From: Bugula neritina | Lineage: Eukaryota > Animalia > Bryozoa | Direction: 5' to 3' | DNA: 64,000 nucleotides | Assembly: GCA_964035545.1 (NCBI GenBank) | Contig: OZ037768.1 | Coordinates: 4,310,741 to 4,374,740 of the forward strand | Shown here: one piece after another, positions 8,069 through 41,500 of the stretch | How the letters are laid out: each line of letters opens with the position of its first letter | How positions within the stretch are numbered: the stretch's first letter is position 1 | Translations under genes and position numbers: made by a program | The notes under the pieces: generated by a model | Database searches by the model: none | Told to the model about the DNA's origin: nothing | Seen by the model: only the letters and a program-made list of their open reading frames with translations

Positions 8069-9012
8069 TGCGCTATAACGTAGTATCTTCCAATCAAAGT
8101 GGTGGAACTATTGTTATTGAAGTAGTTTCATGCCAGCTGGTAATATTCTAACAACTATTAGCATAGCAAACAACTGTTAACCTTTTTCATAATGCTCTTA
8201 TTCATTGTTGTGTAATGTATACTTATATTAATCACAGTTAACACATATGTTGTGTTTCAAAATAAAGTTATGCTTGCTTTGTATAAAACCCGTGTATTGT
8301 GCTGCTAATTTGCTTTTGTTAGTCAATCAATTAGTCAGCCTAATAGGCAGCGAAAATATTTATTCTGCATACATTTTATAATTCTTCACTCAGCTTAATT
8401 GACAGCAACATAATAATCATGCAACTAATAGCCGCTACAATTGTATGATGGATTTCACATCACATTTAAGATTGAACATTATTGCTGCTGCATTACAAAC
8501 TTTATATAATATGTGTTTTATAACTTGTTGAGTTATTTAATGCAATAATTTAAAATTATTAATGTGCTACATAAACTAAAAGCTCAAAACTATTAGCACA
8601 ATAAATGTAAAAGTACCATCTAAAAATTGCTTTTTTAAAATTATGCATATACTATATAATATAGATATATTATATATATAATATAGATATATTATATATT
8701 TATATCTAGTTTGTACAAATTTCTCATCTTCACAATAATATTTTAAACATAGCGAAAACAAATAAATGTATTTTACAAGAAGTTACATATATAAAGCTTT
8801 AAGTGTAATAAACTATAAAGCATAAAACTAAATATATAATTGTTATCAAGTGTGATAAGAAACCATGTTTATACTAATTAACTTATCTACAGCTCCTAGC
8901 TTTATCAAATTTTGACATTTTTAGATCCCAAAATTTTTTAAAGTAGCTTCAGTGCATTTTTAAAAAAAGGTGAATATAGTTTTCCTTGATCTCTCAAATA
9001 TAATCGTGATGA

Positions 9013-15297: not shown

Positions 15298-18200
15298 ATG
15301 GCTTCGGGCCAAAATAGCAAGTTGAGTATTGATCGTTCTTTGCCTAATGGATCAAATAACCCTCCAGTTATTAAAGGAGTCGAGCAGGACAAATATGCTA
15401 AGCTTTTCTATGGGGTAAGAACGAGAATATATACTTATACTTATAGGTCTAGCAGTTGCAGTGGCAGTGTCAGTTAAATTAAATAACTCAAAAAGTACTG
15501 AATGCTACAGTAATTCACTAGCTCTATCACTATGAGTATGTGGGACACAGTATCAGTATGAGTACGACTATCACTATAACTTATGAGTTATGAGGAATAG
15601 TTATTCACTTATACTTCTAGTTATAGTAAATAAGTATCAGTATCACTATCAGTATCAGTATGAGTGTGAATGACTATCAGTATCAGTATCATGGTATGCC
15701 CATACTGACTATCAGTATCAGTGTCAGTAACTGTAAATCACTAAGTGAGTAAGTGGCAGTATGGGTATCTACTATCTAGTATTAGCAATCAGTAAATCAC
15801 AACATCCAATTCAATAAGCATTTAAGTATAACAAATTAACATAAGTTAAACTGTAGCAATAAAAGTAACAGTAACTGATAACAATTACAAGCATGGCCAC
15901 ATGAAGTGATGACAGTTTGAATTAATATTTTTATTATACAAATCCAAAATGTCATTTAAATCTACAATCACTATCACTATGTCTTTGACTTTGGCATTAG
16001 ACTTGGTGATTGTGATTTTTCTTATAATTTTATAGTTTTACTGTAGCTTAAAGTTGACTAGTTCAAATTGGTAAAACTTACTATATGAATTGAATACATG
16101 AATCACATGTGTGATAGCTGATGTAAGCTATGACCATATAATCATATGGCATTATAAAGTGATTATAATTGAGACCATCCTGAGGTTGAATCTATGGCTT
16201 AGTCTTATACTAATGCTTGCAGTTATATTATTATACTACTACTCTAGCAAAAAACAAAGTAGTTGTCTTAGCAGAATAGAATTATTTTAAGTCTTGCGTT
16301 TAATGATTCATTTGTAATTAAAATATTCAGCTGCTTGAGGTTGGTCAATTATTAATATTTAAATATTTGTATTCTAGAATAAAAGTACTTAATTATACTT
16401 AAAGCTTAAATATATTAATAATAATGATATAATTATATAAATAGAAATTTAATTGAACTTAAACCTATCTTGAGAAGCTCGAACTTGAATTTAGTTTTAT
16501 ATCTATTCTAGGTTATTTTAATACAATTACTTCTACTATTATCTTGTATTTATTTTGATGATTATTAAACATATTCTATCAAATTATAATAAAGTAACTA
16601 CACAACAGGTTGTATGTCTAATTTATAGGCGATGGGGCCTCAGATGGCTAAACTAGAGCAAGATATGGAGGAGCAACTGAAGGTACTAGATGACATGAAT
16701 AAGTGAGTTTAGGTCTATGGCAATGTTTATAGATGATAGATGGTAGCTTACTGTAGAACATGTTGACTGTAGAACATAGTATCTGGTGAACATAGTAGCT
16801 GTAAAACATAGTAACTGTAGAACATATCAACTATAGAAAGTAGTAACTGTAGAACATATTAACTGTAGAACATAGTATCTGTAGAACATAGTAGCTGTAT
16901 AACATAGTAACTGTAGAACATATTAACTGTAGAATATAGTAACTGTAGAACATAGTAGCTGTATAACATAGTAACTGTAGAACATATCAACTATAGAAAG
17001 TAGTAACTGTAGAACATATTAACTGTAGAACATAGTATCTGTAGAACATATTAACTGTAGAACATAGTATCTGTAGAACATATCAACTATAGAAAGTAGT
17101 AACTGTAGAACATATTAACTGTAGAACATAGTATCTGTAGAACATAGTAACTGTAGAACATATTAACTGTAGAACATAGTAACTGTAGAACATATTAACT
17201 GTAGAACATAGTAACTGTAGAACATATTAACTGTAGAACATAGTAGCTGTAGAACATTGTAACTGTAGAACATAGTATCTGTAGAACATATCAACTGTAG
17301 AAAGTAGTAACTGTAGAACATAGTAGCTGTAGAACATATTAACTGTAGAACATAGTAGCTGTAGAACATATTAACTGTAGAACATAGTAACTGTAAAACA
17401 TAGTAACTGTAGAACATAGTAACTGTAGAAAGTAGTAACTGTGAAACAGTAATCAATCATATGATTAATCTCTATTAATTGAAATACAAAAAGTAATTTG
17501 ATTAGTTAATTTTAGTAAATGGAAGGAAGAAAAGGAAGCAAAAGATAAAGCTGAAAAGCAGAAATATGTGCCTCAGCCTCTCAAGAACAGGTTAGTTACT
17601 CTAAACTACTCAGCAGTTCAAGTCTGAAACTCAAGTGTTTAAATTACCGTGTAAAGCCATTTCAAGTAATGTCCTGACAAGTGAAAATTATTAGTAATGT
17701 CACAGTGTTGATAAAAGGAGAAAACTCTTAATTATTTGCTAAGTAATAATCCATAAAAGGAATTTCTCTGTAAACCAAGTAACAATTGCTCAGCAGTTTC
17801 ACAGAGAGAAGTCTTGTTTAGTAGAGAGTTTTACAAAGCATTTTCATTTTTAGTGGACAAAACCTAACACAGATATCTAGACGGATAGGTGGTCTGTTTC
17901 GTTTCACCAACTTTCCTGAGAAGTATGTGGAAAAACCGGAAAAGCCCGTAGACCATACGAAAGTACTTACCCAAACTCTGGAGGAGCTGCAGGCGTCCCT
18001 CAAGACAATGATGCCTGCTGGTGGACCTGGGGCTTCTCATGCAGCTGAAAACACGTCTGCTATAGAAGCCAAGGAAGAGGAAAAGGAAGAAGACGAAGAC
18101 GACGATGAGTTTGCAGACGAAGGGTTGATGTAAGTTTATATGGCAATACTAGATAATCTATGGTGTCGCTTTCCTAAATGTTATTATTATGATGTCATTC

Positions 18201-21200
18201 AGGTAACAAAATTACAAATAACTGCCTAGATTTGACTAATTGTAACATTGTTTGGAATGTAGATATAAACTTTCCCAGTATTCAGCTTTCTATAGATAGT
18301 TTTCTAATGACACTTTAGCCTAGGCTAGCTGACACCAGGTTACTGTGAAGGTGGTAACTGGGCCATCACCTTCACAGTATACACCAACATCAATTGTCAA
18401 AGGAAGTTGGAGTCATTTGCTGTGATAGCTTTAGATAATCTGTCTAATTGACACGAAATTTACATATGCGCTGCTGAAATTTACATATAGGCTGCCGAAA
18501 TTTACATATATGTTGTCCCAGTTTACATATAGGCTACTGATTGCTACAAGATTTTGTAATATTTGGCAGTTTTTGCAACTATTATGAGTACCAAAAGGTC
18601 TGCTATGTTTGTACTGTAGAGTGTTCTGCTATTGTGACATGTGTAATCCTCTGTACAAACACAGATCTGCATGCATTACACTTATCACACTGCACTGCAG
18701 GTGCTGACACGTGTATGTATGCTGTCTGAATACGTCTGCAGCAGCTTATTGTTCAGTGAATCTATTTATGACAGAAGATAAATGTATACGAAAATCACTT
18801 ATGCTTGATTGTTTAAACTTTAAACTGTGTCCATAATATATATTATTAAAGAATCAACATATAAATTGATTTACTCCAATTTGTTAAAACTTCATTAAAA
18901 TTATTTGTTAATTAATTTAATTTCACTGAAAATTGTAAAGTATTCAAAAATTTTCCCAACATCAGTTGGAGGAAACTCTCACCAGTTGTGTTGTTGAAAT
19001 GCTGTACTCAGTGTTGTTTATATTCAACAGCCTGTCTAACCTACCTGAACTGAGTGATCTAGAGAGAGTGCTCATGCTGTCGCACAGTATGGCAGCGTAT
19101 GCTACGCGACTCTCGGTTGACCACAGAGAGAGGTTCTATAAGAGAATCTTAAATGACACTACGGAGTGGGTTACAGCTCTCTTTAGGTGTGTGCACCATT
19201 TGCATATATCTCATTGTGTTTGGGTCAACAAGCGTAACAGAATAGTATACTCATTGTTTGTATGTTTCACCAGATTTAATAGGTGGGTTGTTGATTAGAA
19301 ATTAGTGATATAAAGTTGCCGTATGCTTTTTCGCCATAGAATTGTAGTCACAATTATCACCAAGTATATTCTTTAGAGACAGCAATAGGTAGCATGTATA
19401 GTTTAGATAAGGGTAGCCATTAAATAACTCCTAAAAATTAGGAGTCTATAAAAAATTTATAATTATTATTTCATTTTATTTTCTGTGAGTAACTGTGTGA
19501 CTCACAACTAGTCTAGCTCAGGCATACAGACTAGCAGGTGTGAGATTGAGTGTGCAAGGGTATGTGTGCTGTTTACTTAAACGGTTAGGAATACTATGGC
19601 TATATATGTAATATATTATTGTGTAGAATATACACTATAATTATGGCAGTAAGGTACAGTAAAGTGTAGATTATAGTTACTAGTTACTGATAGAACTAGT
19701 GTAGAATATAGTTACTAGTTACTGATAGAAGTAGTGTAGACTATAGTTACTAGTTACTGATAGAACTAGTGTAGAATATAGTTACTAGTTACTGATAGAA
19801 CTAGTAAGACTCTGTTTATGTTACAACTCTTAGAGTGAAGGACTCCACTGCCATGTACCATGACGAACCCAGTGAAGGGCTTATCAATGTGTGTCGTCTA
19901 GCCCTAGCTAGTAAATATCCCGACTACCTGGAGAAGGGCTTTGACTCCCTCTATTCCAAGCCTCCCGTCTTCTACATAAGTGAAGCCAGTTCCCCAGGCT
20001 TAGCTCAGGTTCTTTCAAGAGGGGTAAGCTTTCACTAGACTTTATTTATACACATGGGAGAAATTATGTCATTGTACCACACTGTATACTGTAGCTGCAT
20101 GTTTATATGTATTGTAATATACAGCATTGTTATACTCTGTGAAACTTACTTATTTGATATAGTTTCATCTCTTGCTATATGTTTTATTTTTGAGCTGTTT
20201 TGTTGTCAGGAGTTGAGATGATTTGTATTTATCGAGAAACTACTAGAGTACTAGTTGTTGGCTCAGAGATTCACCTCATCTGTTTAGACTCAATTAAACA
20301 TAACCATTTGATGTAAATCAACACAGCTATTTATATACATGGTGTATGAATTGTAGCTTGGTTTACCAGAAAGCTGTATCTGTGTTGTGCCATGCAAGAA
20401 ATCTGAAGCAGGTCAACTTCACAAGATTGTAAGTTTTGACAATGTTGAATCTTGTGTATAGTGTGGGTATGTGTATAGTGTGGGTATGTATTGTGTGTTG
20501 TGGGTATGTGTATAGTGTGGGTATGTGTATAGTGTGGGTATGTGTATAGTGTGGGTATGTGTATAGTGTGGGTATGTGTATAGTGTGGGTATGTATTGTG
20601 TGTTGTGGGTATGTGTATAGTGTGGGTATGTGTATAGTGTGGGTATGTGTATAGTGTGGGTATGTGTATAGTGTGGGTATGGTGTGTCTGTGTGTGCGTG
20701 CGCGCGTGTGTATGTGTTGTGGGTGTATAGTGTAGAGGTTTACATATGTTGGTTTCATTTAGATTTTAAAGAACCAGTGAAGTTGCTGTAAAGTAGATAT
20801 TCAATTAAATTATGTCTTATCGTCTATCCGCTATAGTTTAGTCACCAACAGTATTCCAAATTGTATACATTTATTAATAATTATAGATTATATGATATTA
20901 AAAGTGTTGCAGGCATATATATATATATGACTAAGTCAGGTGAAGTATGTGATGTATACTAGTGTACAGTGTACAGTGTGCACATTCTGCTGGTATTAAA
21001 TATGCATTCAAAGTACAAACATAAAAGCAAGTTTGTTTCGAGTTTATGCCTCTCCACTTCTCTATTAACTCACGAGTGTCTCAAATTGCTTGCAGGACAC
21101 GGAGGCATTTGAGTCGTTAGTCGGTGACCACATGGCATCTACGAGGGAGCCAGTGCTTCTCTTGGCGTATGCGAGTATGTCTGCACGCGTCTACACATGG

Positions 21201-22399
21201 TGCTGTAGTGTGTACTGTACACACATCAGCACACTGTACTGTAGTATATACTGTACATACCTCAACACACTGTACTGTGGTGTATGCCGTACTGTAGTGT
21301 ATGCTGTGCACATATCAAAACTTTGTGTGTTGTAGTGTATACTGTTTACATATTCAGCTAGTGTTTACATAAAGTTAATAGATTGTTATTGTAGAGTGAT
21401 AACTATATATTTTTGTGGTTCTGGCATATAGTAATAGTACAGTTGGCTAGTTTAGTTGCATTAACTGAGTATTCACTCATTGTGGTTGAAGTATAGGTTT
21501 GAGTGAAGTAATGGACACTGAGCCTTTACACTAGAGCTGATAACTCGTGAGCTTCAAACGTCTAAACATGAAAACTCTTTTTATTCTCCTGAGTGATTGA
21601 GATTTGTCTTCTCGTAATTAGTTGGCATACTATGCTATACTAGCCATGTAAGCTATGACTCATAGACTAGGAACTTTATACTCCAATGTTCATGGTTTAG
21701 GTACTCCTATGTTGGCTGCTGTCGATCCACTTCAGAAGCTGAAAGCAGTTTGTAAAGCTAAGAATATCTGGCTACATGTTGAAGGGTTAGTGATACATAT
21801 CAGCTTGACGTGTGTGTGCGTGTGTGCGTGTGTGTGTGTGTGTATAAAACACATTTGTTGTGTGATTCCATAGCACCTGTGGGTGACATTACAATCTATT
21901 TCATTCCTATGTTTCTTGCAGCCTCAACCTAGCCACACTGTGTCTGATGAGCATACCAACCAACATAGTGTCCGCGCGTACCAGTGACAGCTGCACTCTG
22001 GACATGGCCTCCTGGTTCAGCTTCCCCGGCTCACCCAGCGTCACGCTCTACAGGAAGGAGAGCGAACCCACTGCCCAGTTGCTCAATCTCACTAATGAAT
22101 CTAAAACACAGAAACTTAAGTGTCTCCCACTCTGGATTGCCTTGCAAGCTGTTGGAGTGGACGGCATGATAGAGCGGGTGAAATCTGCAGTACAAATGGT
22201 ATGTCTGATCTCTCTTTCAGTCTCCCTCCCTCCCTCCCTCCCTCCCTCTCTCTCTCTCTCTCTCACTCTCTCTCTCCCTCCCTCCCTCCCTCCCTCTCCC
22301 TCCCTCCCTCTCCCTCCCTCCCTCCATCCCTCTCCCTCCCTCCCTCCCTCCCTCCGTCCCTCCCTCCCTCCCTCTCTCTTTCCCTCCCTCTCTCTCTCT

Positions 22400-22461
<62 letters not shown>

Positions 22462-25400
22462 GTCTCACTCTCTCCTCCTGTATGGTATTTCCTGGCCAAT
22501 AGTTACTCAATCTACCCCTAGAAACTCGTAGTTATACGCATTTCAACTCGATTTAATCTCTTGGATGAGTTGCTCGTAAAAATATTGTTATTGGTTGGAT
22601 CCGTGCATTAAAAGACTCATTATCCGTTAATAAAATCTTTTCATTCTTATTTTAGCCACAATTTTTGTGTATAAAACACGAATGTCTTTTTATAAGAACT
22701 TGAGAAGTATTTAGACTCACTTAAGCTGCTGTTGAGTAATACGTGTTGATTCGTATGTTTGTAGACTGCAGACGTATTACAGTTCCTGTCAAAGATCCCG
22801 GCTGTACATATCTTGGTAAGTGATTTCATCAGTCAATCGCATTGGGTAACTTTTAGCTATGGTGGTGGGTGCTCTTCTATCAGCTCAACATTCTAGCCAA
22901 CTAACACGCTCTCCCAGCTTGTAAATATTGCTTTGCTTAATGTTTACTAGCTCTGCCACTGATTTGTACAAAGTGAGAATCTTGGATGTCACATGTTTTA
23001 TTTGTTTAAAATTAACTGCCATTAGAGGCAAAGCTCTATTCATTAACATTGCATGAAGTAATGCTCATTTCAAGTTTTAAATATTTATTAAGTTTAGTTT
23101 CTTATATAAACGCTCCTGCTGCAATTTTACGGAAAAGTAGCATTTTATTGATTGTTTTACGTAATAATGAAAAAATAAGTGATGTTTTGCATAGTTACAA
23201 CTCTAGCATAAAGTCTATAAGCTAATGTAGGAAGCATAGGGGTGGGAACTTTCAACTTTCAACAAGCTAATGGAAACTATTTTTGGTCTTACTTTTCCGT
23301 GGGAATGTTTAACCTCTTCCTGTTGGCTGGAATGCTGCTAATCCGTGATGGCGGTGACTTGATTGTAGAACAAAAAAGCCAAGGAACAAACTAAAAAGGG
23401 TGTAACTGAGTATTCTGGCCTGGGGGATCTGCTGGGTCAACTTTTGTCTGCCATTGTGAGTATTGACTGAGTGGTCTTAACTGAGTGCTGCCGTAGTGTG
23501 CTGCTGCTGCCGTGATCTTAGCTGAGTGCTGTTGCTGCTAGCTCTTCTATCTGCTATTTTGACAGTAATTGGTAATGCTGTAGGGTGGTAGTTGTCTGCC
23601 CCTGAAATTTGTGTGATTCATTATAATCTAATGCATGCATTCTCCGCATGCTCTAACCAATTAACATGTTTACAGAAAATGATTTCTTTTGCTTCTCTCT
23701 ATTACCTATGTTAAGATATATCTTTAGAAATATTAACCTTCACCTCGGACTAGGTCTTTCAAGTTTTTCCCTTAGCCTTAAATCTCACAATGCTTGTGAG
23801 ATTTTAGTACTAGTACTTTAGTACTAGTGTAATAAAACTATTTCTTTATAAGATAGTAAGTATTCATTTTTTCTAATTATTGCAGCAATTGGTCATCAAT
23901 TTGCACTGGCTAAAATATTGCATTTTTGCAATAATTTCGGGAAATTTTATATATTTTACATTTTAGTTGGTGTTTGAAATGGCCACTCCAGTTGTGATAT
24001 TCAAGTACGGGAAATCTCGAGAGGCGCCCGTTCCAGGTATGTTGTGCTATGTATTCTAGTGTAGTGTTATTCTATATAGTTTTGTGTCTTATGTAGTGAT
24101 GTGTGTTATGTAGGGTTGTATGTATCGTGTGATTAAGTAACATATGTGTAAGTTTTCTTCCATGAATTTGGAATTGCCCTCTTTAGTTCCTGGCGCTGAA
24201 TAATTTATTGCCGAGAATCCTACAGTTTTCCACTCATTTTCAAAGTTTTATTGTAATAATTTACTTTATGAGGATGTGTAGTGCTCAACACTTTCTTTTT
24301 TATTTTATAACTCCCAGACAAATAGTCCAATCAGTTAAATATATTGCTTCACTCTGTATACATGTAGTAAAGTTGTAAAAACGGCATAATTTAAAACTAA
24401 TTTTCCATTTTTGAAAAAGAGATGGTGCTGAATTTGGAATTGTATTCTTTTTTATGCTTAATCTGGCTGTTTATATACTAAACTCATAGTATAAGTATTT
24501 TTGTTACTCCCAATGCAATTTGCATATAGTGTAAAATAAGCATATATTTTGTCACTGGTGGAATTTTGGAGTTGTTGCACCTTGCAAGTACAAGTACATG
24601 CGCGTTTAATGATTCAGTGCAGAGTTGTATTTGGATGCTGTAATTGCTGTCAACATATTCCTGCAGAAGTTGCTCCGTATGCTGCTAGTCAAGATCCAGC
24701 ACCTCAGAAAGAGGCTGATGGTGACAATGACGAGAGGTTGAACAGATATCTGGAGTGTCTCAACATCTGGGTGAGTTGTAACTTTGTGTTGAGATGACAG
24801 GATTGAAATGATTGGGCGATCAGTGTTTTTATGTTTGGTTGTATTTTAGTTGCATGTGGTAATGAAAACATAATAATATAATATAAGTTTTATATTATGC
24901 TATAGACATAATAGTATAATATAAGCATAATAATATAACATAGCCGAATAAACTGTTAATTCTGAATTATCGTCAATTCCAAAGTTTTATTAATGAGTAA
25001 TCAATATTGTTTTAATAATTTTCTAAGCTTCTAATAAGAGTTTTTGATTCCTTTAAATCTGCACAAAATCTATGAGTATTTTGAGTAGATACAAGCCTTC
25101 AGTTACATTCACTAATTAACTGTATAATTCAACAATACTGTAAACAATACCTGCTCAGTCGTATTGCCACTAGGTATCAACTTGTGCATTGCCTTTATTG
25201 ATTGATTCCCCACCTATTGATTAGCTGTGAATTGAAAAGACCTTTGCTATTCTCTGTAATTGAAACAATGCTTGCAAATAGAATTGTTGATATTTTGTCT
25301 ACAACCCGTAATGAACAGTCTATTCATCGCAACTCATACAACTTTTTGCCTAAATCCAAAATCATTTTATAAAATAAACAGTGACTGTGTAAAGCATGCT

Positions 25401-28400
25401 TTTGTCCTGTTATAGATTGCAAATCTCCGTTGCTGTAGCTATGCCTGTATGCTTAGTTTACATTCCTTACGCAATATCTCTGCAATAAGCAAATACCCAA
25501 CACTTACAGCTTAGACTATATCAGTCAAAACTTTCATACTGTAACCCATGTAATTCAGTGATGGATAATTTTTAATGTTTATTATCATTTTTACTCAAAA
25601 ATAATTGACTATTCATGGTAGTTTTATGATCATGTCACGTGTTTTCTGGTGTCTTTAGTTTGTGGAGACTGTAAAGAGAGATTGCCCGCACGTGTACCTT
25701 GAAACAGTAACCCTAGAAGATGGTACTCTGGCTATCAAGTTTTCTCCCCTTGAATATGCATACGGTATGCTTCTCTATTCCGGATATAATAGCATAACCA
25801 TGGGTCAACTGATTGCTACTACTTTATGTGCCAACTTAATTCTTAGCCAAGTATACCTAATTCTTGAAAATTTGCTTTGTAGCCTTAGGGACTACAGAAG
25901 ATCATGTTAAAGAGTTCATAGGGGTAGCTCAAAGACAGTTGGTGAGTGATTGCATTTTATCAAAGTATTTTATATAAGATGCACAATCAAGTGACACAAA
26001 AATCGTTTTATCTTTAACTTTTATTGTTGTGCCTGTTCTAAAGTCTTTGGGAATGCTTCGTGAGATAAATGCTACTATGTCACAAATATACTCATAGTGA
26101 CTATTACTACTACTATACTCATAGTGACTGTTACTACTACTATACTCGTAGTGACTGTCACTATATTGTTAATACTGTTGTACATACAGAGTATGATTTA
26201 TTTGTGTCCAGAGCATAATGGATGCCACAGTTAGTCACCGGGAATCATTCATAGCAGTTGTGGAGGCACAAGACAATCTGACGTACATAGAAATACCCGG
26301 ATATGCTGGCATCGGTGCTGTTCAGTAAGTCGTCTGCTGAATTTTCTTTCACAGTTTGTCAACATTTTACTGTGTGAGGTGTTGTGTGTGTTATGCGTGT
26401 GTGTGGTGTGCTGTACAAGATGCAATCATACAAATCCACATTAAGATTTTGCTGCATGTTTTATGTGAATGATAAATATATTGGCGTAACACGAACAACA
26501 TTTCTGATGTCTAGTGCTAACCTCCTTTCTTCTTTCATACACACTGTTCTTCATTGGTTCATTTCTATATGAAACTTGCTTTTAGAGATGCTTTTAGTAT
26601 TTCACTCACTCATTATGCTTCAAGTCGAGCGGACTGGTCAAATTCAGTGTGATTTGAGTGGCTGTTTTATCAGAGATGGTAATGTGTGTATAAATAAGTA
26701 GGCAGACTACACTCATATCATATCTCTACTCACACCCAGGTACATACCCACTGATTGGCTGGAGCACCTGTCCAACCTGCCACCCAAAGGTAAGGATGAG
26801 ATAGACAAGATCAACATGGAGCTGGTGCATCAGCTGAAGTCTAGTGACTCAGCATTCACTCTGGGATATACTAAAGACAACCTGGCGTGTGCGAGGTTTG
26901 GTCTTATCTCTCAGGACACTGATATGGAGGAGCTGCTGGGACTAGTCTACACTACTGGCAAAGACATAGAAGAGTCGTCTAGGGTGAGTGTGACTACAGA
27001 GTATCACTGAGTGTGACTATAGAGTCTCACTGAGTGTGAGTACAGAGTTTCACTGAGTATGACTACAAGTACTGTGTAGAGTATCATTGAGTGACTACAA
27101 GTATTACCGGGTGTGACTGCATATACTGTTATCTTTACTAGTTTATGGAGCAAATGGCAGAGCTGGTAAAGAAAGGAATACAGCAGGCCAACGTTGATCT
27201 GGAGAAAGAGAATGAGTCAAGACTACTTCAAGAGGTGTGTGTCATGTGTTATGAGTCATGTGACATGTGTTATGTGACATGTGTTATGGGTCATGTGGCA
27301 TGTGTTATGTGACATGTGTTATGTGACATGTGTCATGGGTCAATACTAGTACTACTTATACTACTAATACTAGCTTTTTGTTTCTATTGCTATATGGTTT
27401 CTACAGGTGTGTATGTCTAATACTGCCTTAATGTTGACAAAGAACTTGGGCTATTATAAGTTGCTAATAAATTTATTTAGCATTAAATGGGTTACCTTAT
27501 GTACACTGCAATATACTATTGGATTTTTATTAAATACAATGGAAGTTGAACAATGAATTTGCAGGTTACCGCCAAAGTCACGGTAAACTATTTGGCATTA
27601 AAGATGTTGAGTTTAACATGTTGTTTCTGATGATAATTATTTACCCTAGATTTGTTAGCTTTTCCTTGTGAAATCTGTAAGTTTTAGCTGGTAAAACGTT
27701 GTGCCACATGTTCTAGGTATAGGATGTGCGTATGCCAATCTGTGTGCGACAATATCCAGTATGTCATCATCTCCTCATGCTTTGTGTTGTCTTTCACAGG
27801 GAGTCCTGAGACAGATTCCGGTGGTCAGTTCTTTTGTCAACTGGTTCTCCCCTCCACCCAAAGAGGTCTCCAATATCAAAGGACGAGCTTTCAACTTGAA
27901 TTCAGGTACAACTACTGCATCCATATTTGAAATGTTAAACAATTTAATAGAAAAAACACAATTTGCTTGAATCAGTAGTTTTGTCTCAAGACAAAAGTAA
28001 AACTGCAATGTGTTGTACTGCTAATATTTCTGTGGCCATTTTGTTTTCTCAATAGGAACGGTGAAGAGCACAGAGCAGACGTATAAACACCACATGCAGA
28101 TATTAGAGCAGCAGCCTGTCACCCCTAAACGGCAGCAGCCGCTCAAAACTATTCTCAAACCCCCAGCCGGGTCTGTCAGCACCCCTCCGTCCTCCCCTTC
28201 CACTCAGCACAACAACTCCCCTATTGCCAGTACGTCAAGTCTATACTTGATTCGTAATCTTGTCTTACTAAGTCATGATGAAACACCCATGTGACTGCAA
28301 TTTTTATTAGTAGATAATACATCATTTCCTGTTTCAGTTCGCAATCTTAACTAGGTTTTTTTCCCTAAGCATTCCTCTACAAGTGGAAGCTCTAGTTTAT

Positions 28401-28629
28401 GTTATCCAATGACTAGTTGCCTATTTCAGATGTAGCAGTTAGTTCTGCCTCTGCCACAGTAGCTGCGTCCTCCACTCTCCCAGCCACTCCTTCCACCAGT
28501 GAGAGTGATACCTCCACCACTGCTACTTCTTCCGATTCCAACACTTCTGGCTCAACACTCGAGACTGTAACTTCTCCAGAGGTCAGCCCTAGGGACCCAC
28601 CCTCTACCTCCCACACCAAAGAGGTATAG
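15298..28629 (+). CDS. PDXDC1: Pyridoxal-dependent decarboxylase domain-containing protein 1
   Basis: Exons 15298-15414, 16629-16702, 17516-17590, 17854-18129, 19031-19186, 19834-20023, 20357-20428, 21096-21174, 21701-21785, 21922-22198, 22765-22815, 23369-23455, 23967-24036, 24667-24770, 25659-25764, 25883-25941, 26212-26324, 26740-26983, 27142-27234, 27800-27905, 28056-28229, 28430-28629 join in frame. Recognisable PDXDC1 segments: SHSMAAY..RILNDTTEW, EGLINVCRLAL, IWLHVEGLNLATL, LPLWIALQ, GVLRQIPVVSSFVNWFSP, KGRAFNL. Confidence 0.9.
15430..16020. repeat. Degenerate 6-nt-periodic tract (AGTATC/ACTATC/AGTGTC-type) in PDXDC1 intron 1
   Basis: Runs such as agtatcagtatcactatcagtatcagtatgagtgtg. 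Confidence 0.65.
16750..17445. repeat. 16-nt minisatellite (ACTGTAGAACATAGTA-like), more than 40 degenerate copies
   Basis: Direct tandem copies in PDXDC1 intron 2. Explains the spurious ORFs 16648-16830 and 17163-17456. Confidence 0.93.
19672..19805. repeat. 35-nt minisatellite (TAGTTACTGATAGAACTAGTGTAGAATATAGTTAC), about 4 copies
   Basis: Direct tandem copies just upstream of the acceptor at 19833. Confidence 0.88.
20455..20680. repeat. 17-nt minisatellite (GTGTATAGTGTGGGTAT)n
   Basis: Direct tandem copies just after the donor at 20429. Confidence 0.9.
22208..22458. repeat. (CT)n/(CCCT)n polypyrimidine microsatellite
   Basis: Almost pure C/T tract following the PDXDC1 donor at 22199. Confidence 0.95.
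26984..27340. repeat. Two degenerate short tandem repeats (GAGTGTGACTACAGAGTATCACT-like; CATGTGTTATGTGA-like) beginning at PDXDC1 donors
   Basis: Repeats visible at 26984-27120 and 27235-27340. Confidence 0.7.
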
Positions 28630-29507: not shown

Positions 29508-32500
29508 CTATGTTCCCCGGGGAAACATAGTTGCCAGTGATACTACAATAGATATCGTGTAGAGGCAGAAGAATGTTCTGTCCAGAACTAAGGCTACGGC
29601 CCTCCACTCCCCTCTCACCTTCTCTAGACTCTCCTGTGCCCTCTGTTTGTATATTAATGTCTTGATAAACCTTCTTATCTCCTTGACGTCTGACTCAAGG
29701 CTCTGGTACAGGTGTATAGGAGACAAGTCAGGTGACTGATCTACGTTCTCCTTGATAGAGTTCTTACTAGTGTGGGTGTGGTTGTTGTGGTTATTAGCAT
29801 TGGCTTGGTTCACTCTGTAGGTGCACGGTGAATCTGTTAGAGAAGACAACTCACGTGGCTGATACTTATTGTATTTCATTTCGTGAGCCTTTATTTTCTT
29901 TAGTTCCTTCCTAATTCTAGGGTCTGTTTCAAATTGAGAAGGTGGTTTGTCTTTTGGGACGTAATTTGTCATGAAAACTACTCGTGCTAAGCCCACCAAC
30001 ACAATCTACAAGGACATGCATAGTTGCTTTACACTCTGCAGTATTTTCCTGTTGAAATTGAAAATCAATGGTGCTTAAACCATCATGAAAATAACTATTT
30101 GCATTTGTGATATAGATAAACATTAAACAATGTTCAATATTTTACGTAGACCTTGAAATTTCTATACATGTTAAGTAAATCACTTGTATAATTTATGACT
30201 ACACCCATACTAATCCTATAACAGAGATACTCCCAAATACACATTTGAAAACTATCAAAACTTACTCGTTTAACCCAATAAGGAACTTTATTGGTTCGTG
30301 GACCGCGAAAATACAAGTGAATGACTACAACAGCTAAAAATGTCGATAAGGTTATCATAATCATGTTCAGACAGTAGTAGGCCCCTGCAATAGAGTAAAT
30401 AGAGAATATTATAACATAAGTAGAGAGGTTGCCCAATTTATTCAGCATTGTATATATGTATAGCTTGAGAAAAAATTGTCTGCCATAGTACTAAACATAT
30501 TTTTTTAATGTTATGTATAATGTGCATTAAAAATTCTAAAATTTTCTTCTGGTACCAAAAGTAATGATATATAGAGTTCTCATAGCAGACATTTTGAATT
30601 GCTAACTTTGTTTAATTTAATAACTTGAAATCACTAGAGTAGCATTTCCTTACAATAAGTGGTATATTGATTTCAAAAACTATACCTGTATAGTTAGCAG
30701 CCGACAATTATGTAAAAATCAAGTGTTAGTTATAAAAGAAAATAATATTAGTATTGAACTGTTAAACACCAAACTGGGTCACACAAACTATAATATGCGA
30801 AGTACTAAATATTGAAAATTAGTAAAGCATGCAAAAGCAGCAACCAAAAATCAATAGATAGAGTCAGGCTTTACAGCATTTCAATTTGTACAATGTGCTA
30901 TATGTGCATGTAGCTTGTGGGCAATAAACTGTTTAAATGCATTCAATGAACTCGATTTTTTCATTAGGTTAAATTAGAACCTTTCTATGTCAGTTAAACA
31001 AACCAATCAAATAATCATAAACATAAAATGTGAAGCACTCAAACAGATTTGTCATCTAACCTAATGTTTAATTGGCCAATTAATTTTGATTGCGATCTTG
31101 AAACTCAAACTATGCTGGTTTGATAATCAGGTCCTCTGTCTTGCTTTTAGCCCAAATAAGCAATTAACTGCAGCATAAGCATGTAACTTGAATTGAAGTA
31201 AATAATTAAATGTTATTTCAGAAAGTCAATTAGAATTGAAATGCTAGTGCCAATCTAAAAATGAATCAGTACCTATGCGGGGTATACTCTCTGAATCAGC
31301 AGGACACGAATCAGCTAACAGTAGTAACAACACAAAAAAGGCCACAAATATACTCATGCCTACAAATAGAGAATATTAATACAAGCCAACAGACTAAATA
31401 TTATATAAATCACTCTCATACATGTATTTTATAACTGGTACTTCAGATGTGCTGGGCTCCACAACTTCACTAACTTGACAAAATAAACTAATAATTATTT
31501 AGCCAGCGTTGAATTACCAGTTATTTCTATACATGTACAAAATCATAAGGGGGTGCTAACACTTCAAACAGTGATGTGCTTAATGCAACACTTTAAACCA
31601 GCTTGATGCAAAGCATAATTCCCTCATCAACTAATTGAAAGACATTTTCAGGACAACCCATGGTAATTAATGCTGATTCAGTCAAGCTGGTTAAAAGCAT
31701 TGCGTTTGCGAGTGGTGGAGTGAGTGACGTGGGGGTCTGCACAATGCTGCTGTTACCTATTAGCGGAATTGCTGCCGCAGCAGGTGGCGTGTTATCAGTC
31801 AATAACAGAAGTAGTAGAAAAAACGCCACAAAGATGTTCATTCCTAAAATTATATAACAATAATTTAAAATAAATAGTATACTAGTTTCTTGAACACAAA
31901 CAGGAATGTAATGGCTTTGCTTTGTTTTGTGTGAATGTCAAAGAATCATTCATGCAGTGGATAATGACTTGACATTGAGAATAGCTCTGCTTCTTCAATG
32001 ATATTTTGACCAGATTTTCTCAACTAATGCAAAATTATTGTTAAAATATACAAAAACTACTTATCAATAATTGCTAGTAATAATTTCTACACAAAGTGGT
32101 GTATTTCAAGTCTTTATATTCCAACAGCTGGCAATTTTAAATAATTTTCAAAATGCAGAGTAAAATATTATTTGTATCATAATATATAGTACATTTCATC
32201 ATACGAAAGCGATGAAAAAACGAGTAACATGTTAAATGGAACTTTCAGAATATATATATAAAGTGCATGATGCTTGCATATAATACCATGTAAAACATGA
32301 ACTGAAAATGCTATAAGGGCATTTACTCAGATTGTGTGTAAATGTACATTTACAGATGAAATTGCAATTGTACATTACCTGCTTGTTATTTTATAATTTA
32401 AATTTATTTATGATCATACGCACATCTAAATGCATGCGGATTTGCATTATGTCATCTACAATCAAGTTAAATTTGTACCATTGCATATTTTTTAAATGTT

Positions 32501-35500
32501 CAATACACGACTCAGAGTTTGTTCTGTGTAGAAAAGAAAGTTTGTGTAACACTAGAATGTTTCCCTAAAGACAAAACTAATGGTTTATAATTCTATTTAG
32601 TGGAAAAAGGAATAAATAATTATGATAAGAAAAGCACATCAAGCTTATTCCTTCTTCTGGAAGCCCAGTGTTACATTAGTAAAGTTTCTTTATGCTGTTG
32701 AAGTGTTAGGATAAAGTTTTCAAAACAATTAGTTGTACTAAAACAACTTCACTCCAACTGCATAATATGTTATAAAGTTAAGCTATTAGTCTGCACTGTG
32801 CTTATTGTATGAAACAGTCTAAGTAAGCATATATGCTGAGAAATATGCTTATTGTTGGTTATAGCACAGGTAATTCGTGCGGAGAGATAGTTGCACAAAA
32901 CTGAGCGAATCTAATGGGAAAAGGCACAACAAAGCTGATCTGCTGACAGCTACAAGAGGGACAGCTTACCCAGCTGCATTTTAGCAGCAGATTCTGGTGG
33001 CAGCCAGAATAGAATCATTGTCAGCAGGGAGAGCAGAACGCAGGGCAATATCAGAATGTAGTTGTAAAAAGCCACCTACAAAACCCAACCTATCATGAAG
33101 AAAATTAGTAAAGTTGACCTTGAGACAAGGTATACCAATAATTCCAGAGCTCTGATATGACTATTTATGTAATCAGTTCAACTGTGAGTCTCAGACTTAG
33201 AAAGTTGAGTTGTGACTTAAGTTTTATGACTTGCAGAGCTCTAGAAATGTATTGGTATGCCTTCAACGGCCTGATTTGTAACTTTGGCCGACACAAACTC
33301 ACCCATCTGCATCTTAGCAGGAGACTCAGGGGGCAGCCAGAAAAGCACCATAGTCAGTAATGAGAGTAGCACACAGGGTAATATCAGTATGTAACTGTAA
33401 AAGGCCACCTAAAAACTCATCACCAATAGTACAAGCATAAATTTATTTGCATTGAAATTTGTTCATTTCACTCCTAAAAGTATCATATATTTTATTTAGT
33501 TTAATATTTTATCTAATTATGATCAAATGTCACTGAAAAGCAGGAAAAGCTATGTTTCCTATAACAAGGCACTGTAATTTAATTTATGTGTTACAATGTA
33601 AATAATACAAGTTTTAACTCCACAAATGTCCACAAAGTCAAAGTATTTTGACTTCACAGCAATTTCCAACATACTAATCTGTTATATAACATGAAGCAGC
33701 ACAAGGTTGAATTTCTAACCAATAATTTTGATAGGATAAATCATTTGACTTTGGTGCTTGAACTTGCATCACATTAGTTTGAAGAGTTAAAAGTATCGAT
33801 TTTACCTGCCGTTTAATGACCACTGTAAAAGTGAGGTCAGGAAATGGCTGAGTGCAACACGGGTAGAAAATGACGTTCTTTCTACCGGGGTGAGCTAACA
33901 CGTCCCACTCATTACTAGGAACATAGTCCGTCAGAGAAATGTGCGGAGAATCCTAATAAAAAATACAGTTTCTAATTAGTGAGCCACATAATGGAATAAG
34001 AGTTCAAACACCCCCAGCAAACTATTGAGAGAGAGATGGAGTTATAAACCTGATTCTTAATTATATTATATAGAAATGCTTGTGGAGATCATTTATCTTG
34101 ATATTAAACTACTATAATTGAAAAATCAATGTCCATATCAGAGCTGCTTATGAAAGTATACAACAGCCCATACAGTGAAAAAAAGGCTGCACTGAAGTTA
34201 TATTAGACATGAGTGACCACTATTTGAAATATATAGTTATAGGAATATCTTACTTGATAGAAATCTATATCCAATTTTAATCCATCGTAAGACCAGGAGC
34301 CAAACTTGAGATGGCAGATTTGGGAGTCAAACGGGAAGTTTGTAATATCAATTGAGCAGGCGCTTTTAAATATACTCGTTGGAATCCAAAGCACTTCACC
34401 ATTCTCTGACACCACACAGAGAGCATCGCGGAACTCTGACAGTCGGTCATCAGCGCTGTAAATGTTACCATGACAACATGTAAACACATTTTGAATGTTA
34501 TCTGGAAGGTTTACGATATTACTTTGTTTGCTGATCGCAAATCTTTGAAAAAAAACTAATTTTTTAAATAGTAGTGTTGACAAAGTTGAGTTATAATGTT
34601 AAATTTCTGCCTAATTTATTTATAAAAAATGTAAGTAAACAGCAACTAACATGTAAAATCAAATACATCATTTTCTTTTATAAACAACTGTGAGTTATAT
34701 ATTGAAGGACACTGCTGGACCTAAGCAAATAAGTTGCCCACTTTTGTTTAAAATTGTTCCACATTTGTACCATACCCTTGTTTTTAAATACAAATTAGAA
34801 GTACATAATATATAGATCATTTTTGTATTCTGTAATTATGCATATGAAAAATTTCAATAGTTTCATTCTTATTAACACTGGTGAGAAAACTAATTGCACT
34901 TATATATAGAATACTTACCTTTGTTATATTACATATGCAATGCAATTGTTGTGTAAGTGGTTAATAATTAACAAAAGTTCTTTTCAAGCCTATAGCTTCC
35001 ATTCATATAATTACCTCTATTGTATGATCATGGGAATTGCCATAGGCAGTATGAGCATGATGCAGTTATGAGAAGACGCTATATCCACATACGTAGTAGG
35101 TGTGGGTGGAAAATTTACATTGTACTTATAGTAAATAGTAACAGTACTAAAAGAATGTATTATGTAAGCTGAGAGTTGAGCCTTACAGAAATGAAATAAA
35201 TTGAAATAAACCAACAAACTAAAGTTATAAAATTTAAAAAATTTTTGCATTTAAACTGTTTAGTATTTTTGATATTTGACACTTTCAAATAGAATTAAGG
35301 GATCTCGTCATAGGAAGGTAATATTAAGTACTCAATATACGAACTAGTTGTAAAGCACTAAGTCAGGTCTCCAAATATCTTTAGCAGGAACTCGAACTTC
35401 ACTGACTCCACCATAATCACTTGAGTTCCAGCTGAGTAGATAGTCTGTCCAAATCTGTTATAAGAATAATATTACTATCACAGACTATAAGCATTTCTGT

Positions 35501-38500
35501 ATATATAGTATTGATCATTTTCAAGAACTTGATTCTAACTGAACTAAATCTGCATTAAAAAACTGCTTGTATTTATATTTATTGTGGTTATTCCACATTA
35601 TGTGATGGTACGTTAATAAAATTTAACGAAGATGGTAGTATGATTTGGCAAACTCTACATTGTCATATCTAAAAGCAATTTAACAGCATGCAACAGTATC
35701 TTTGTATATCTTCACTAAAAATTACCACATGGAAAAAAACCGCTTTAATAATGCATGAAATTTGGAAGCCAACCGGTATTTAGATATAGTAGTTGTTACC
35801 AGACGGTTCCAAGCCCTGATAGTCAGTACTTGATTCTTCTCATCTAGTCTAAGAATCTGCACTAAGCCAAGTCCATATTTGAGAGAGATTGGTTCAGAGG
35901 AGTTTTTGACGGGTCTACCGGTAACTCCAGCCTCCTTGTATGTGTCTATGAGATCTTTTATCAGCCTCTTTTCATGCGAGAGCGCTAGATTACCTACCAA
36001 TAAAATCCAATTGTTGGTGAGTTTGATAATATCACACGCAAAAAAAACACATCATATTTTGGTAGAAAGCTGTAATGCATATTCGTAACCAAACTTTTAA
36101 ACATAAGCTATTCAGATATATAAATTATTCAAACGGCAACTTATTGAGGTTTTCAGAGTAATTCTATCTTGTTGAACGTTTAGAGCACATATTCAGTTTA
36201 ATTAAACATAATTCTACAGACTAAATATTAAATATTTATTTCCAAAACTTTAATTGTAATTAGTTGCTTACATTCAGTGAACTCTCAATATAAAAAGCAA
36301 GCAATGACATAAGAAAGAAAAGTGTATATATATTGAAAAATTCAATTAGGCTTTCTTACACTGCTATATAAAGTATACATGCAGCAAAATATTTCCCCTT
36401 ATTCAAAGATAGGTCATTCAGTAGCAAGGCAAGCTAATAAATAATATAGCTAAATATAGCAAACTCCATAAATGCAGAAGACTATCTTCAGTATGGCAAA
36501 GCAGCGTAGGCAATGAAGCATAACTTATATGACTTCTAACCTCACAAACTACGTTGCAGTTACACCTATAAAAAAAGCTTGTACAACCATTATAAAGGGC
36601 TTTTCATCTATATTTTGAATACTATTTTTATTAATGAAATTAATAAAAACATGCGCAGTGCAACAGCAAGCAAGCATAAGCGAGCTCTGACATGAAAAAC
36701 CTGTAACTGCATCTCATTCTATAGAATATGATTATAGATTTACACAACAGCTTGATGTTTACTTGATAACGAATTTGCATAGAGAATGTGCGAACTGGAT
36801 GTTGGTATGTTTTACTAAAACCGCTTCAAGGTGACAAGTAGTACCTGAGTGTAGATTTAATAGGAAATCAATCCACTCTGAATTATAAGGTGACACAAAC
36901 ACAGCTTATTGTGCTTAGCTGTCATTTCAAACACACAAATATGTAATAAATACATTATGCTATACTATGCTACAGTATACCATACTATGCTAAACTATAC
37001 TATACTATGCTGTGCTATGCTATGCTATGCTATGCTATGCTATGCTATGCTACAGTAAACCATGCTACTCTATGCCGTACTACAGTATACCATACTATGC
37101 TATGCTATACTATGCTGTAGCTATGCTATGCTATGCTATATTATGCTCTACTATGCTGTAGCTATGCTATGCTATGTTACATTATAATATTATATGATTT
37201 TGGGAATAGAACTATTAAATATGGAAATCTCTTGGATTAATGCAACTGTTGTAATAGTGGTGATAGCTAAATTCCCAGTTGGTTGAGCTAATGGTGTGTG
37301 GAGTAGATAGGACACCCCATCTAGCTGCAGATGAGCCACTTCTAAATCACTAAATCATATTATGGAAGAATCACTATATTGAGATATCCTGATTTTTGTC
37401 CCATTTACATACACACCAAGTTTATACTTGTATCTAGTCTAGGGAATTTTAATAATAGCTGCAAATGCTAATCAAACGGCCAACATAGTCATGTATACTG
37501 ACCCTATAGTTGAGCCTGTTTAGCTGAGTAAACACGAATATAGATGATAATTAGATAATCTGGGGACCAATCAATATATCCCAAATAATACTAAGTGTTA
37601 GTTGCATAGCAGACGCCTCCCCTTTGAATATATTGTGTTTCCACTGACCAGTATTGCATAATAAGTTATTTACACTTGATCTAGTTTTTACCCAACATTT
37701 TGGTAGATTCAAAAATGCTCGACTAACGCTCGCTTACAATCCCCGTTCTAAACAAGCTTCATAGAAATCCACATACACAATAAAACTAGTTATAGTGTAT
37801 AAACTGGCCAAATAACCTGTCAATATCCTTACCTTTAACTATTTTTCTACAAACTAGACACACTGATGTTAATTAAATAGATGTTAATTAAATAGAATTT
37901 ATATTTTTGAAATATGTTATCTATAAGACAAATAAGATTATTTTAAAATAAAACTGATTTAGTTTAATCAAAAGCCTGAAATCAAGTTTATAAATGTGTG
38001 TTGACAGTTAAAAGGGGATTAAACTTTTTCTAAAATAACCTCGATAATATTTACTGCATATGATGTTTTAATATTGTAATATAAAATATGTTATTTCAAA
38101 AAAGTAGAGTAGTGTGGGATAGAGGCATTCATGTCAATTTACTATGAGATCATGAATTAATCAGCTATGATATACCTTGATTTGCAAACAGGTGAAGTTA
38201 ATTAGTAAATTAGCTCATACGCTGTCTAATGGCCAATGTTCAATGAACTGTCTGCTGCCGTTACAAACATGGATTTGCACTAATTGCCTTAACTTTCAAA
38301 CTCAGTACAACGCAAGCTGAGCATGTTGATAAATATTTTTCAAAGTTAACTTCTATTCAAGATAGTTATTAGCCTCTAATTAGAATAACAATCTCATTGT
38401 TTTGGGAGGTACAAACAAGAATTCTTATATGACAAGTTGAAAAATTAAAGCATTGTTTTAAGGCATGACAGAGATGGTGTGATTTAGTAAGTTATAAGTC

Positions 38501-41500
38501 AAAGAGCTGGTTCTTTGAGTGCAGTCACTCAACCTGGTAAATTACCATTCTATTGAATATAACAGCCATGTGGATACTTGGGTGTTGGCATTAATTTTAC
38601 TTATAACTATTCAATTATATTTAAAAAATATGCCAGAAGTTTGAATTAAGTGGTTAATAACAGTTTTGCCAAATTTATCAGCATTCTAAAATTTACTTTT
38701 GATACGTAAATTTAGTAAATTACTTGCAATGATATGAAGCAACTGTATTGTAATAGGATATATTGCATTGGGAGAATAAGATGATTAAAATGTAGTAATT
38801 GCAACCAAATAATACCAAGTAATCATTTTGTACCATGAAATAACGCTCAAATACAATTAGCTGTAACCAGAAAAACCAAAACCATCAAAAAATCCAGTTA
38901 ATTTTTTATCTCAAAGTTGTTTAAATGTTATAAGAAAAAAATTTCCGTATTATATAATCTATTTCAAATGTAATATAGGATTATGATATCAGATTTTAAG
39001 CATATGGTACATTTTAAATAATCAGTTGTTAGTAATAATATAAAATAAATTTAAGAGAAAAAGATGTTGTTTAAATTAAAGCATGAAGCAATAAATATTA
39101 TATTTCAAATAAAACAACTGTAGAACAATTGTTGAATAATTACTATATGAAATCTTACGTACTATGTACCACATGGTTGTTACTTCTAAACAGATAAATT
39201 CTAGTCTTTCCTTACTGAATATGTCAATAAACACCATATTAGAAAGTTTTCTTACCTTTACCAACTCTTGATCCGGGAATGGAAAGATGCTTGTTAGTGT
39301 TACATAAATGCAGAAGACATAACAATACTAATAATACTCCTGTATACGTTGAACACATGACAAGGCATTCAGCTCATGGTGGTACCCAACACAGCAGTAC
39401 CAAAATCTTTTTTAACAATAATGCCTTTCTAAAACATGGCTGCTGAGCTGATCTGATGAAGGTACGGTGGCAGCAAGCAGTGCTACACAATACAATGCAT
39501 TAGCCAACAGTTAGTGGTCACTCCCAGCTTCATAGTGAAATGGGATCAATCACAACTGCATGCAGTAAATTGTTTTCCAATAAATATAGGAAGTCAACTA
39601 TAGGCTTGATTCAACTCAACCACGCGTGAACTCTATAGTAGATTAGCATAGGATTTCTATTTATAATTCAGTATAAATACTCATACTGTATTTCAGATAG
39701 AAACTACCGTGAAAAACAAATAAACAAGTTTTAAGGCTGAGTGTTTAGCGATGTCTGTTTTTATGAAAATATTATTTATTCGAAAAATAAAAAAATAAAG
39801 TTTGAATTATTTTGCTACACATAATATAAATTCATATTATACACTGTTTAGAAATTTTTCAACTTAATTTTGTCTATTAGTTTCACTTTTAATAAATAAT
39901 ATAAACAAGGCACTAATGAGAAGCTTTCATTTATGTCAGCAAATGTTTTGATATTCAAACTATGATTCTAGGATGGCATTATCTGGTTTTATTATAAAAT
40001 TATATAGCAAAAGTAATTTTTAATGAAAAAAGTGTCAATATTATCAAATCAGCCAAAACTACTTCTCATTCTATTTTTTGACATTGTATGGTGTAAGTTA
40101 TAGTACATGTGTACCAAGAGGTTCGGTAGATGCAAGAGAAACTAACTCCAAACAAGTATTTTTTATAAATAATTATGCAATAAAAATATATGTAGTGCAT
40201 TTAATTGAAGTATAAAGAAATGGAACATCAAAAATATGATACTTTATTAAAGTAAATGTTATTGGTGTAAAAACTAAAATAGAGGTAAAGCAAATTAAAT
40301 ATGTTCCTTTGATAAAAGTTCTTCTTTCACACTTGTTTAGTTTTCAAGAAAAATGCATTTTATGATTCATGAATATTGAACATAAATGCCATATTACATG
40401 TCAGTATGCAATTTACCTACATGTGCAGGTAAAAGTAAAGTTTTTAATGTATTTAATAATCAAATTGCATTATGATTTATTATCTGCAGGGTGAGAGTTC
40501 AAAGTTCGATGTTTAAGTCTTGAAATTTCAATCATAAATTGGAATTTTTTCTATAGTCTACGCAGTCTATGCAGTGATGAGTTATTCAGCAACATGAGCA
40601 CAAGCAATAGACAAAGCATATTTTTAGTTTTTACAACAGCGCTTGGATATGCATGCAAAACTATGCACAACAAAGCTACACAACTATATTAGATTATATT
40701 ATTATGCAGCTGGAATAATAATACAACAGTATCCAATACACAAACCTTACCATGGGATCAGTTTTAAAGAAATCCAAAGCGGTATATTTCATTAAAAAAC
40801 AAAAAGTTAGCTTAAGTAACATTTACATAAAATTTGCAAAATTTATTCTCTGTGAAACAATTGCTGGCTATAACAAGCTAACGGAGGGGTGAAATATCTC
40901 AAGATTTTTCAAAAACATCTTTTATACATTCAACACCAAAATTTTGCTTATGAACTGCCAGAATTTTAAATAATTCCTAATTAACGTGTCATTTTTTTGC
41001 AGACAAAATTAAGAATCAAACAAAGTCTTGCGTGTGCACGTGGCTCAGGCTATTTGCAGTGTTGAGTAAATGTTGGTAACAGTCATAGGTAAGGAAGCAA
41101 TTTCTTTAGACGAATCACTTATTGTTTTTTATTCTATATGGTGTTTTAGTAGTCTGTTGAAATATTTAAAAAAGTTTTTTTAGATATTTTTGCTCATCAC
41201 TAATTATTAAGATAATGATGAAATGCCACTGCTGCACAAAAGTTATTTTCTCACTGCAAAAGAGTGAGCACAATTCCCAAAAATTGCAAATCTAAATGAA
41301 AAATAAAGCTCTAAAACCAAAAAGGACACCATGCATTAAGGCATTTACTTAGTAAATTACAGTATATTTGTTAATTACAGTACTTAGTAAAAGTAGCGAG
41401 TCTTTGTAAAGACATGTGCTTGCTTGTAAATACTTTATTTTTAACTGTATTTAATCAGCTAATTACTAATATATTAAAAGTTTTCCCATGAACGACTATG

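Follow-up and report, generated by a model that had tools for sequence, protein, structure and literature searches.

The window analysed here, a 64,000-nucleotide stretch of the genome of the bryozoan Bugula neritina (contig OZ037768.1), carries on its minus strand a gene which, judged by its sequence, is an acetylcholine-gated chloride channel subunit of the AChRB/LnAChR-B (PAK) type. Two consecutive exons of this gene, designated A and B, are each present in two copies, A1 and A2 (106 nt) and B1 and B2 (87 nt), and all four lie between the exon for loop C (33952-33806) and that for the third transmembrane segment, M3 (30384-30266). The copies of pair A are mutually exclusive and both are spliced, while the use of B2 is proposed here from its conservation.

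The receptor gene and its exon map

Analysis of the gene exon by exon recovered the domains PF02931 and PF02932, the Cys-loop and the vicinal cysteines YPCC of an alpha-type nicotinic acetylcholine receptor (nAChR) of the Cys-loop family. The motif PAK at positions -2' to 0', which distinguishes the AChRB clade from receptors with GEK, is encoded by exon A1, and A2 encodes AAK. Placement in the clade was based on top matches and exon-wise identities. Exon A1 matched lophotrochozoan type-B proteins (from molluscs, annelids, a brachiopod, a nemertean, a bryozoan and flatworms), as did its full-length homologues; it is 97% identical to Watersipora P0186, the nearest named protein, and 89% identical to Octopus bimaculoides P0006, and its match in Biomphalaria is named "subunit type B". 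Pro-Ala occupies -2'/-1' in 270 of the 298 M1-M2 motifs of the fetched proteins and Ala-Ala in three. The preliminary description had called the gene an anion-type nAChR, and the motif and the closest relatives confirm its membership in the PAK clade, the current itself being predicted by homology. The gene shares the nAChR fold, the vicinal cysteines and PAK with Lymnaea LnAChR-B, Octopus AChRB1 and Schistosoma SmACC, but differs from them in its A2, which is without the proline of the motif.

RNA evidence for the exon map came from assembled contigs of one RNA-type run in each of three studies; their source lineage is about 4-5% divergent from the window. In the direction of transcription the gene opens with a probable first coding exon (39256-39358; phase 1, signal-peptide-like), which is drawn from sequence and frame arithmetic and lies outside the coverage of the RNA contigs. 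The start of the ligand-binding domain follows (35800-35993; PF02931), 70% identical to a paralogue on contig C5 of the same genome (the C5 paralogue), and then the exon with loop A (35345-35454; PF02931), whose 3' end corresponds to the loose end at 34455 in RNA contigs X2 and X4. Next come the Cys-loop and loop B exon (34254-34455; PF02931), with an RNA joint 34253/33951 in the three runs, and the loop C exon with the vicinal cysteines (33806-33952), which RNA joints connect to A1 and to A2. Exon A1 (33303-33408; PF02932) encodes the first transmembrane segment, M1, and the M1-M2 linker up to 3' with Pro-2', and A2 (32970-33075) is its alternative with Ala-2'. Exon B1 (31757-31843), the default form, encodes M2 from 4' to 20' and the M2-M3 loop, with Leu13'. 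Its alternative, B2 (31273-31359), is intact and has Val13', Ser6', a more polar loop and a non-consensus donor, GTACTG. The M3 exon (30266-30384) is joined in RNA to B1 and to the last coding exon (29508-30005), which encodes the intracellular loop, M4 and the stop codon and was defined from RNA contigs, Pfam and comparison with the paralogue. By frame arithmetic, one A and one B exon give a frame of 521 codons, A1 and A2 together cause a frameshift, and B1 and B2 together keep the frame.

The duplicated exons and their splicing

The coordinates, the AG/GT ends, the phases within each pair and the absence of stop codons in the four exons all hold as first described. It had also been stated that an open reading frame track misses three of them; a separately made list catches A1 and B1, and so misses two. 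Because P0186, a close homologue, aligns without gaps to human alpha7 over M1-M3, the prime numbering could be fixed: exon A spans M1 to 3' and exon B runs from 4' through the whole M2-M3 loop. Together the pairs thus cover M1, the filter, M2 and the M2-M3 loop, as had been claimed. A1 and A2 are identical at 85 of 106 nt, and a recount gave 14 synonymous and 4 non-synonymous codon differences (non-synonymous divergence, dN, 0.06; synonymous divergence, dS, 1.4), in agreement with the earlier count of 4 changed residues in 35 despite many synonymous changes. From A1 to A2 these are S5N, V21I, P30A, which is position -2', and M35L, which is 3'. B1 and B2 share 51 of 87 nt and differ by 10 synonymous and 11 non-synonymous codons. 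The conserved changes comprise -2', 13', 19', 21' and the M2-M3 loop, so that the notion of cassettes which rebuild the whole pore was overstated; Ala-1' and Lys0' are identical in all forms and no acidic residue is introduced into the filter.

An assembly artefact or a haplotype duplication was ruled out by the 14 synonymous differences, by the DNA contigs of another individual and by orthologues. In the DNA-type run X14, from this other individual, B2 and B1 lie on one contig and A2 and A1 on overlapping contigs, and other species share the layout. Two interleaved genes were ruled out as well, the other exons having no second copy in the window.

Joints of loop C to A1 and of loop C to A2 were found in X1, and loose ends matching the loop C exon in X2 and X4. 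The joints A1-B1, A2-B1 and B1-M3 were found in RNA contigs of the three runs; the depths of A1-B1 and A2-B1 (31/33, 130/93 and 117/170 per run) were of the same order of magnitude within each run, contig depth being a poor measure of level. No A1-A2 joint was present in the contigs of the three runs, which a rare A1-A2 form could escape. Pair A is mutually exclusive, each copy being joined to both flanks and never to the other. For pair B the claim of mutually exclusive splicing found no such backing: B1 alone was found spliced, and B2 was crossed only by low-depth unspliced contigs. Accordingly, of the junctions by which the proposal was to be checked, 33806 to 33408, 33806 to 33075, A to 31843 and B1 to 30384 were present and A to 31359 was absent. 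Up to four pore variants had been predicted. A1B1 and A2B1 were seen, and no isoform containing B2 appeared in the three runs; since B2 was never found spliced, two isoforms are established and four are possible. The missing B2 joints are an absence of evidence, because assembled contigs drop rare forms. Unspliced contigs of the B1-M3 intron (30385-31756) occurred in all three RNA-type runs, this being the main intron covered in X4, and slow splicing or retention of it is possible.

Conservation of the exon pairs and relatives of the gene

Orthologues were sought by a scan of metagenome contigs with alignment of database proteins, followed by an exon survey. This led to the identification of four true orthologues (L020, L033, L034 and L039), with M3 exons 85-95% identical; by their sequences these contigs, like L027, L032 and L041, appear to come from bryozoans. 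The full layout loop C-A1-A2-B1-B2-M3 is present in L034 and L039. L033 has one A exon and both B exons, and L020 has A2 and starts with the last six bases and the GTGAGT donor expected of A1. The introns are unalignable among orthologues and synonymous sites are near saturation. Even so, the A1 copies differ by 0-1 residues and the A2 copies by 0-2 (dN up to 0.033, dS 0.2-2.8), the window A1 showing a dN of 0.00-0.013 against a dS of 0.8-2.6 to L034 and L039. Every A1 has Pro at -2' and every A2 has Ala, which is thus fixed in four lineages. The B2 orthologues (L033, L034 and L039) share the GTACTG donor and have a dN of 0.03-0.22 against a dS of 0.6-2.2. B2 keeps Val13', Ala19' and Ser21' where B1 has Leu, Thr and Asn. 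None of 20,000 neutral simulations matched B2 in the frame, splice sites and residues kept. The purifying selection proposed at the outset for A1 and A2 is thus borne out and extends to pair B, with dN far below dS across orthologues, and these tests reject B2 as an old pseudo-exon. No candidate homologue was recovered when the B2 stretch served as query.

In exon trees the A2 copies cluster weakly (65/79), three of them at 99/98, and in bryozoans the B1 copies of the two paralogues fall together, separate from the B2 copies. These short-exon trees agree with duplications of A and B that are older than the sampled species; with 87-106 columns they cannot separate one ancient from several independent M2 duplications outside bryozoans.

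The C5 paralogue has identical intron positions and only one A exon (PAK) and one B exon, to which B1 is 89% identical. A1 and B1 are therefore the copies of ancestral type. In orthologues of the C5 paralogue (Watersipora L023, and L027, L041 and L032) B1 is followed by another, more divergent M2 exon, and L032 has three copies. Two M2 exons were also found in Lingula, in Dimorphilus, in Pinctada (in another subclade) and on contigs L036, L040 and L074, and many mollusc and oligochaete-like loci have a single one. In the Lingula RefSeq models isoform X2 contains the upstream M2 copy alone and X1, X3 and X4 the downstream copy. The M2 duplicate is therefore not unique to the window gene and recurs in homologues of several phyla; the duplicated A exon is, among the loci surveyed, confined to the orthologue group of the window gene. 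A single exon encodes both loop C and A in the annelid and brachiopod genes, so that duplication of A needed an intron that these genes lack.

Several irregular copies were seen among the relatives. The models DgyrCDS7085 of Dimorphilus (L021:13144-13364) and FSP39_006302 of Pinctada (L105:16730-16953) join both M2 copies in one protein, probably by annotation error. The annelid-like L036 has a tandem duplicate of the loop A exon (1687-1967) besides its two M2 exons. A divergent GC-rich transcript of the clade, L024 (P0058, SRR17902662), combines AAK and a B2-like M2 in one mRNA. In the oligochaete-like L097 and L104 the beginning of the A region is repeated, incompletely and in broken form, upstream of the intact copy. 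At L106:4993-5193 (G000:C5:10349992-10350192) the Cys-loop exon of the C5 paralogue occurs as an isolated copy containing a stop, and the 20 kb examined there contained no further receptor exon.

Elsewhere in the window, two tandem nAChR genes of the cation type (GEK-like filter) with few introns lie on the minus strand at about 2800-11600, the second without the vicinal cysteines of loop C. A plus-strand gene at about 19800-28600, which we take to resemble PDXDC1 (pyridoxal-dependent decarboxylase domain protein), is convergent with the receptor gene, with less than 1 kb separating the two at their 3' ends. Non-coding arrays comprise a tandem repeat of 16-bp period (about 16790-17440) and a TAGCA-type pentamer (about 36950-37180).

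Predicted roles of the cassettes

We consider it probable (about 0.72) that a single AChRB gene uses two mutually exclusive cassettes to tune the gating of a chloride channel. Each mRNA takes either A1 or A2, each of which is frequent, together with B1; B2 would replace B1 rarely, or in a small number of cells or stages. The choice between A1 and A2 places Pro or Ala in the -2' ring, the intracellular constriction and desensitisation gate of anion-selective Cys-loop channels, and pair B would exchange the residue at the pore-facing 13' (Leu or Val), the upper end of M2 and the M2-M3 loop. Position 13' is part of the hydrophobic girdle and the M2-M3 loop couples binding to gating. Because Ala-1' and Lys0' never change, all forms would remain chloride-selective, and a tuning of gating is favoured over a rebuilt pore or a flip of charge selectivity. 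The cassettes would most likely adjust agonist sensitivity, cooperativity, desensitisation and blocker sensitivity, over a range which mixed pentamers would broaden. Several studies bear on this reading. Octopus AChRB1, of the PAK clade, is an acetylcholine-gated chloride channel and a functional homomer (10.1101/2025.04.02.646353), and the -2' proline ring of the glycine receptor is its desensitisation gate (PMC6945115). GABA rho1 with P-2'A stays anion-selective (PNa/PCl permeability ratio 0.05), with its half-maximal effective concentration moving from 0.8 to 2.8 and its Hill slope from 3.4 to 1.1 (PMC2174155). A bolder claim, to which we give somewhat less than even odds, is that all four combinations are produced, depending on cell type or stage, and that the -2' switch together with the alternative M2 gives chloride channels with clearly different desensitisation or permeability.

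Co-inclusion of both copies of a pair would be blocked by a short distance from donor to branch point, and in pair A the frameshift would act as a further barrier. Splicing between neighbouring exons is blocked when this distance is below 50 nt (PMC5740500). The A1-A2 and B1-B2 introns of L039 measure 49 and 63 nt, and the inter-copy introns of Dimorphilus and Pinctada 47 and 53 nt, so that in these animals the introns are short enough in themselves for such a block. The A1-A2 intron of the window has 227 nt and is filled by a long hairpin (33116-33271; folding z -3.6), a candidate steric block; with the hairpin folded, the A1 donor would stand about 42 nt from the predicted branch point at 33105. 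The longer orthologous A1-A2 introns also fold strongly (z -4.3 in L034 and -4.2 in L020). The B1-B2 intron of the window folds (z -2.7) into two candidate hairpins, one with 25-nt arms (31582-31706) and one at about 31409-31545, and folding of this intron is less clear in orthologues. Since the inter-copy introns are 47-63 nt long in the three other animals, or folded into hairpins in the window, we favour steric exclusion, which in the window would apply only after folding and with predicted branch points. Insertion of miniature inverted-repeat transposable elements was ruled out as the origin of the hairpins, both being single-copy in the genome. The second B1-B2 hairpin contains a 9-mer, GCCCAGCAC (minus strand, 31449-31457), that also occurs in the B1-B2 introns of L033 and L034, and the 63-nt intron of L039 has a closely similar sequence; no consistent pairing partner of GCCCAGCAC was found, and it is a candidate splicing element. 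The pyrimidine tracts before the B2 and M3 acceptors (31364-31383 and 30397-30416) are identical at 18 of 20 positions, and the two acceptors could compete.

Several of our results weigh against the model of two tuning cassettes. Three of 30 control intron tiles also fold with z below -2.5, in the B1-B2 intron it is not clear that folding reduces the distance to less than 50 nt, and the hairpins have no alignable sequence between species. Nor was a docking site-selector pairing conserved in the four species, for which reason that mechanism was dropped. No B2 splice joint was found in the contigs of the three RNA-type runs, taken as these are from a divergent lineage, and the window B2 has evolved more quickly than the B2 copies of the orthologues (7-9 residues, dN about 0.2), with nearly all changes in the M2-M3 loop, plus Ser6'. 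The last two points would suit a gene in which only pair A is alternatively spliced, with two isoforms, and in which a B2 functional in the ancestor has recently fallen silent and is beginning to decay. The long branch of the window B2 (0.6 in the exon tree), its loop residues Cys22', Ala24' and Asp25', present in none of 197 clade members, and the loss from the C5 paralogue of a second M2 copy that Watersipora and others have kept point the same way. We nevertheless regard this as unlikely, as the frame, both splice sites with the conserved GTACTG donor, the whole M2 helix, Pro23' and Pro30' are intact, the changes cluster in the loop and dN/dS to the orthologues is 0.14-0.34; rare conserved exons also have a precedent in insect exon 8c.

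A change of ion selectivity, with A2, perhaps together with B2, forming a mixed or cation-permeable acetylcholine channel that would alter the sign or strength of a synapse, is very improbable. GABA-A beta subunits have Ala at -2', no acidic residue is added in the window gene, Ala-1' and Lys0' are constant, and the Leu/Val swap at 13' is conservative, both residues being common in the clade. Moreover P-2'A hardly alters the permeability of GABA rho1 (PMC2174155). For such a change one may cite that the conversion of alpha7 from cation to anion channel involves -2', -1' and 13', two of which differ here (PMC8011927), that the Pro-Ala motif is the accepted defining mark of these anion channels (PMC4055736) and that Ala-2', rare as it is in the clade (3 of 298 motifs), is fixed in A2. 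We give least credence of all to a regulatory role in which inclusion of B1 and B2 together, or retention of the B1-M3 intron, would yield non-functional or dominant-negative subunits. B1 and B2 together would remain in frame and unspliced contigs of the B1-M3 intron, the main intron covered in X4, recur in all three runs, but these contigs may be pre-mRNA or DNA, the inter-copy introns of three animals are too short for splicing, and purifying selection on B2 acts at the amino acid level in four lineages.

The type of phenomenon is already known, because insect alpha6 has mutually exclusive M2 exons, a precedent correctly invoked in the preliminary description: its exons 3a/b and 8a/b/c are alternatives and exon 8 covers part of M2 (PMC6393475), and 8c, the most divergent copy, is conserved and rare or absent in cDNA (PMC1919356). 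Both genes have a tandemly duplicated M2 exon whose most divergent copy is least used, 8c there and B2 here. Insect alpha6, however, is a cation channel of another clade whose second cassette, exon 3, lies in the ligand-binding domain, apart from the first, and the M2 duplication described here appears to be independent of it. Either-or duplicated exons also tune Rdl (exons 3 and 6), GluCl (exon 3), the glycine receptor alpha2 (exon 3), AMPA receptors (flip/flop) and Cav1.2, and convergent tandem-exon splicing in ion channels was reportedly described by Copley in 2004. The alternative exons of Rdl, GluCl and glycine receptor alpha2 lie extracellularly, whereas both cassettes of the window gene are transmembrane and pore-forming. 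The mollusc type-B RefSeq isoforms examined have no second A or B copy, and one Aplysia model skips the M2 exon. A published overview of lophotrochozoan nAChRs is silent on alternative splicing, and a search covering few subscription papers found no description of alternative exons for the pore, either for the AChRB clade or for bryozoan receptors, which fits the earlier statement that no description of back-to-back filter and pore cassettes was known. The novelty lies in the alternative M1/-2' exon, in its position immediately ahead of an alternative M2 exon and in how widely M2 duplicates occur within the AChRB clade.

If all four forms are made and differ clearly in desensitisation or permeability, the gene would be the first example in nature of a Cys-loop receptor whose -2' ring is switched by splicing, accompanied by an M2 cassette repeatedly duplicated, or retained from early times, across Lophotrochozoa. 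The -2' proline of anion-selective Cys-loop channels has been studied for decades by mutagenesis; here a Pro/Ala switch is kept by splicing across species saturated at synonymous sites, beside an alternative M2 helix. The clade expresses in oocytes as homomers, and the isoforms of this gene may offer natural variants with which to probe -2', 13' and the M2-M3 loop in gating and selectivity. Tiny introns and hairpin-filled introns could also be compared as two routes to exon exclusivity. Duplicated M2 exons extend to inhibitory acetylcholine receptors of bryozoans, brachiopods, annelids and bivalves, in which gene models often miss or misjoin them.

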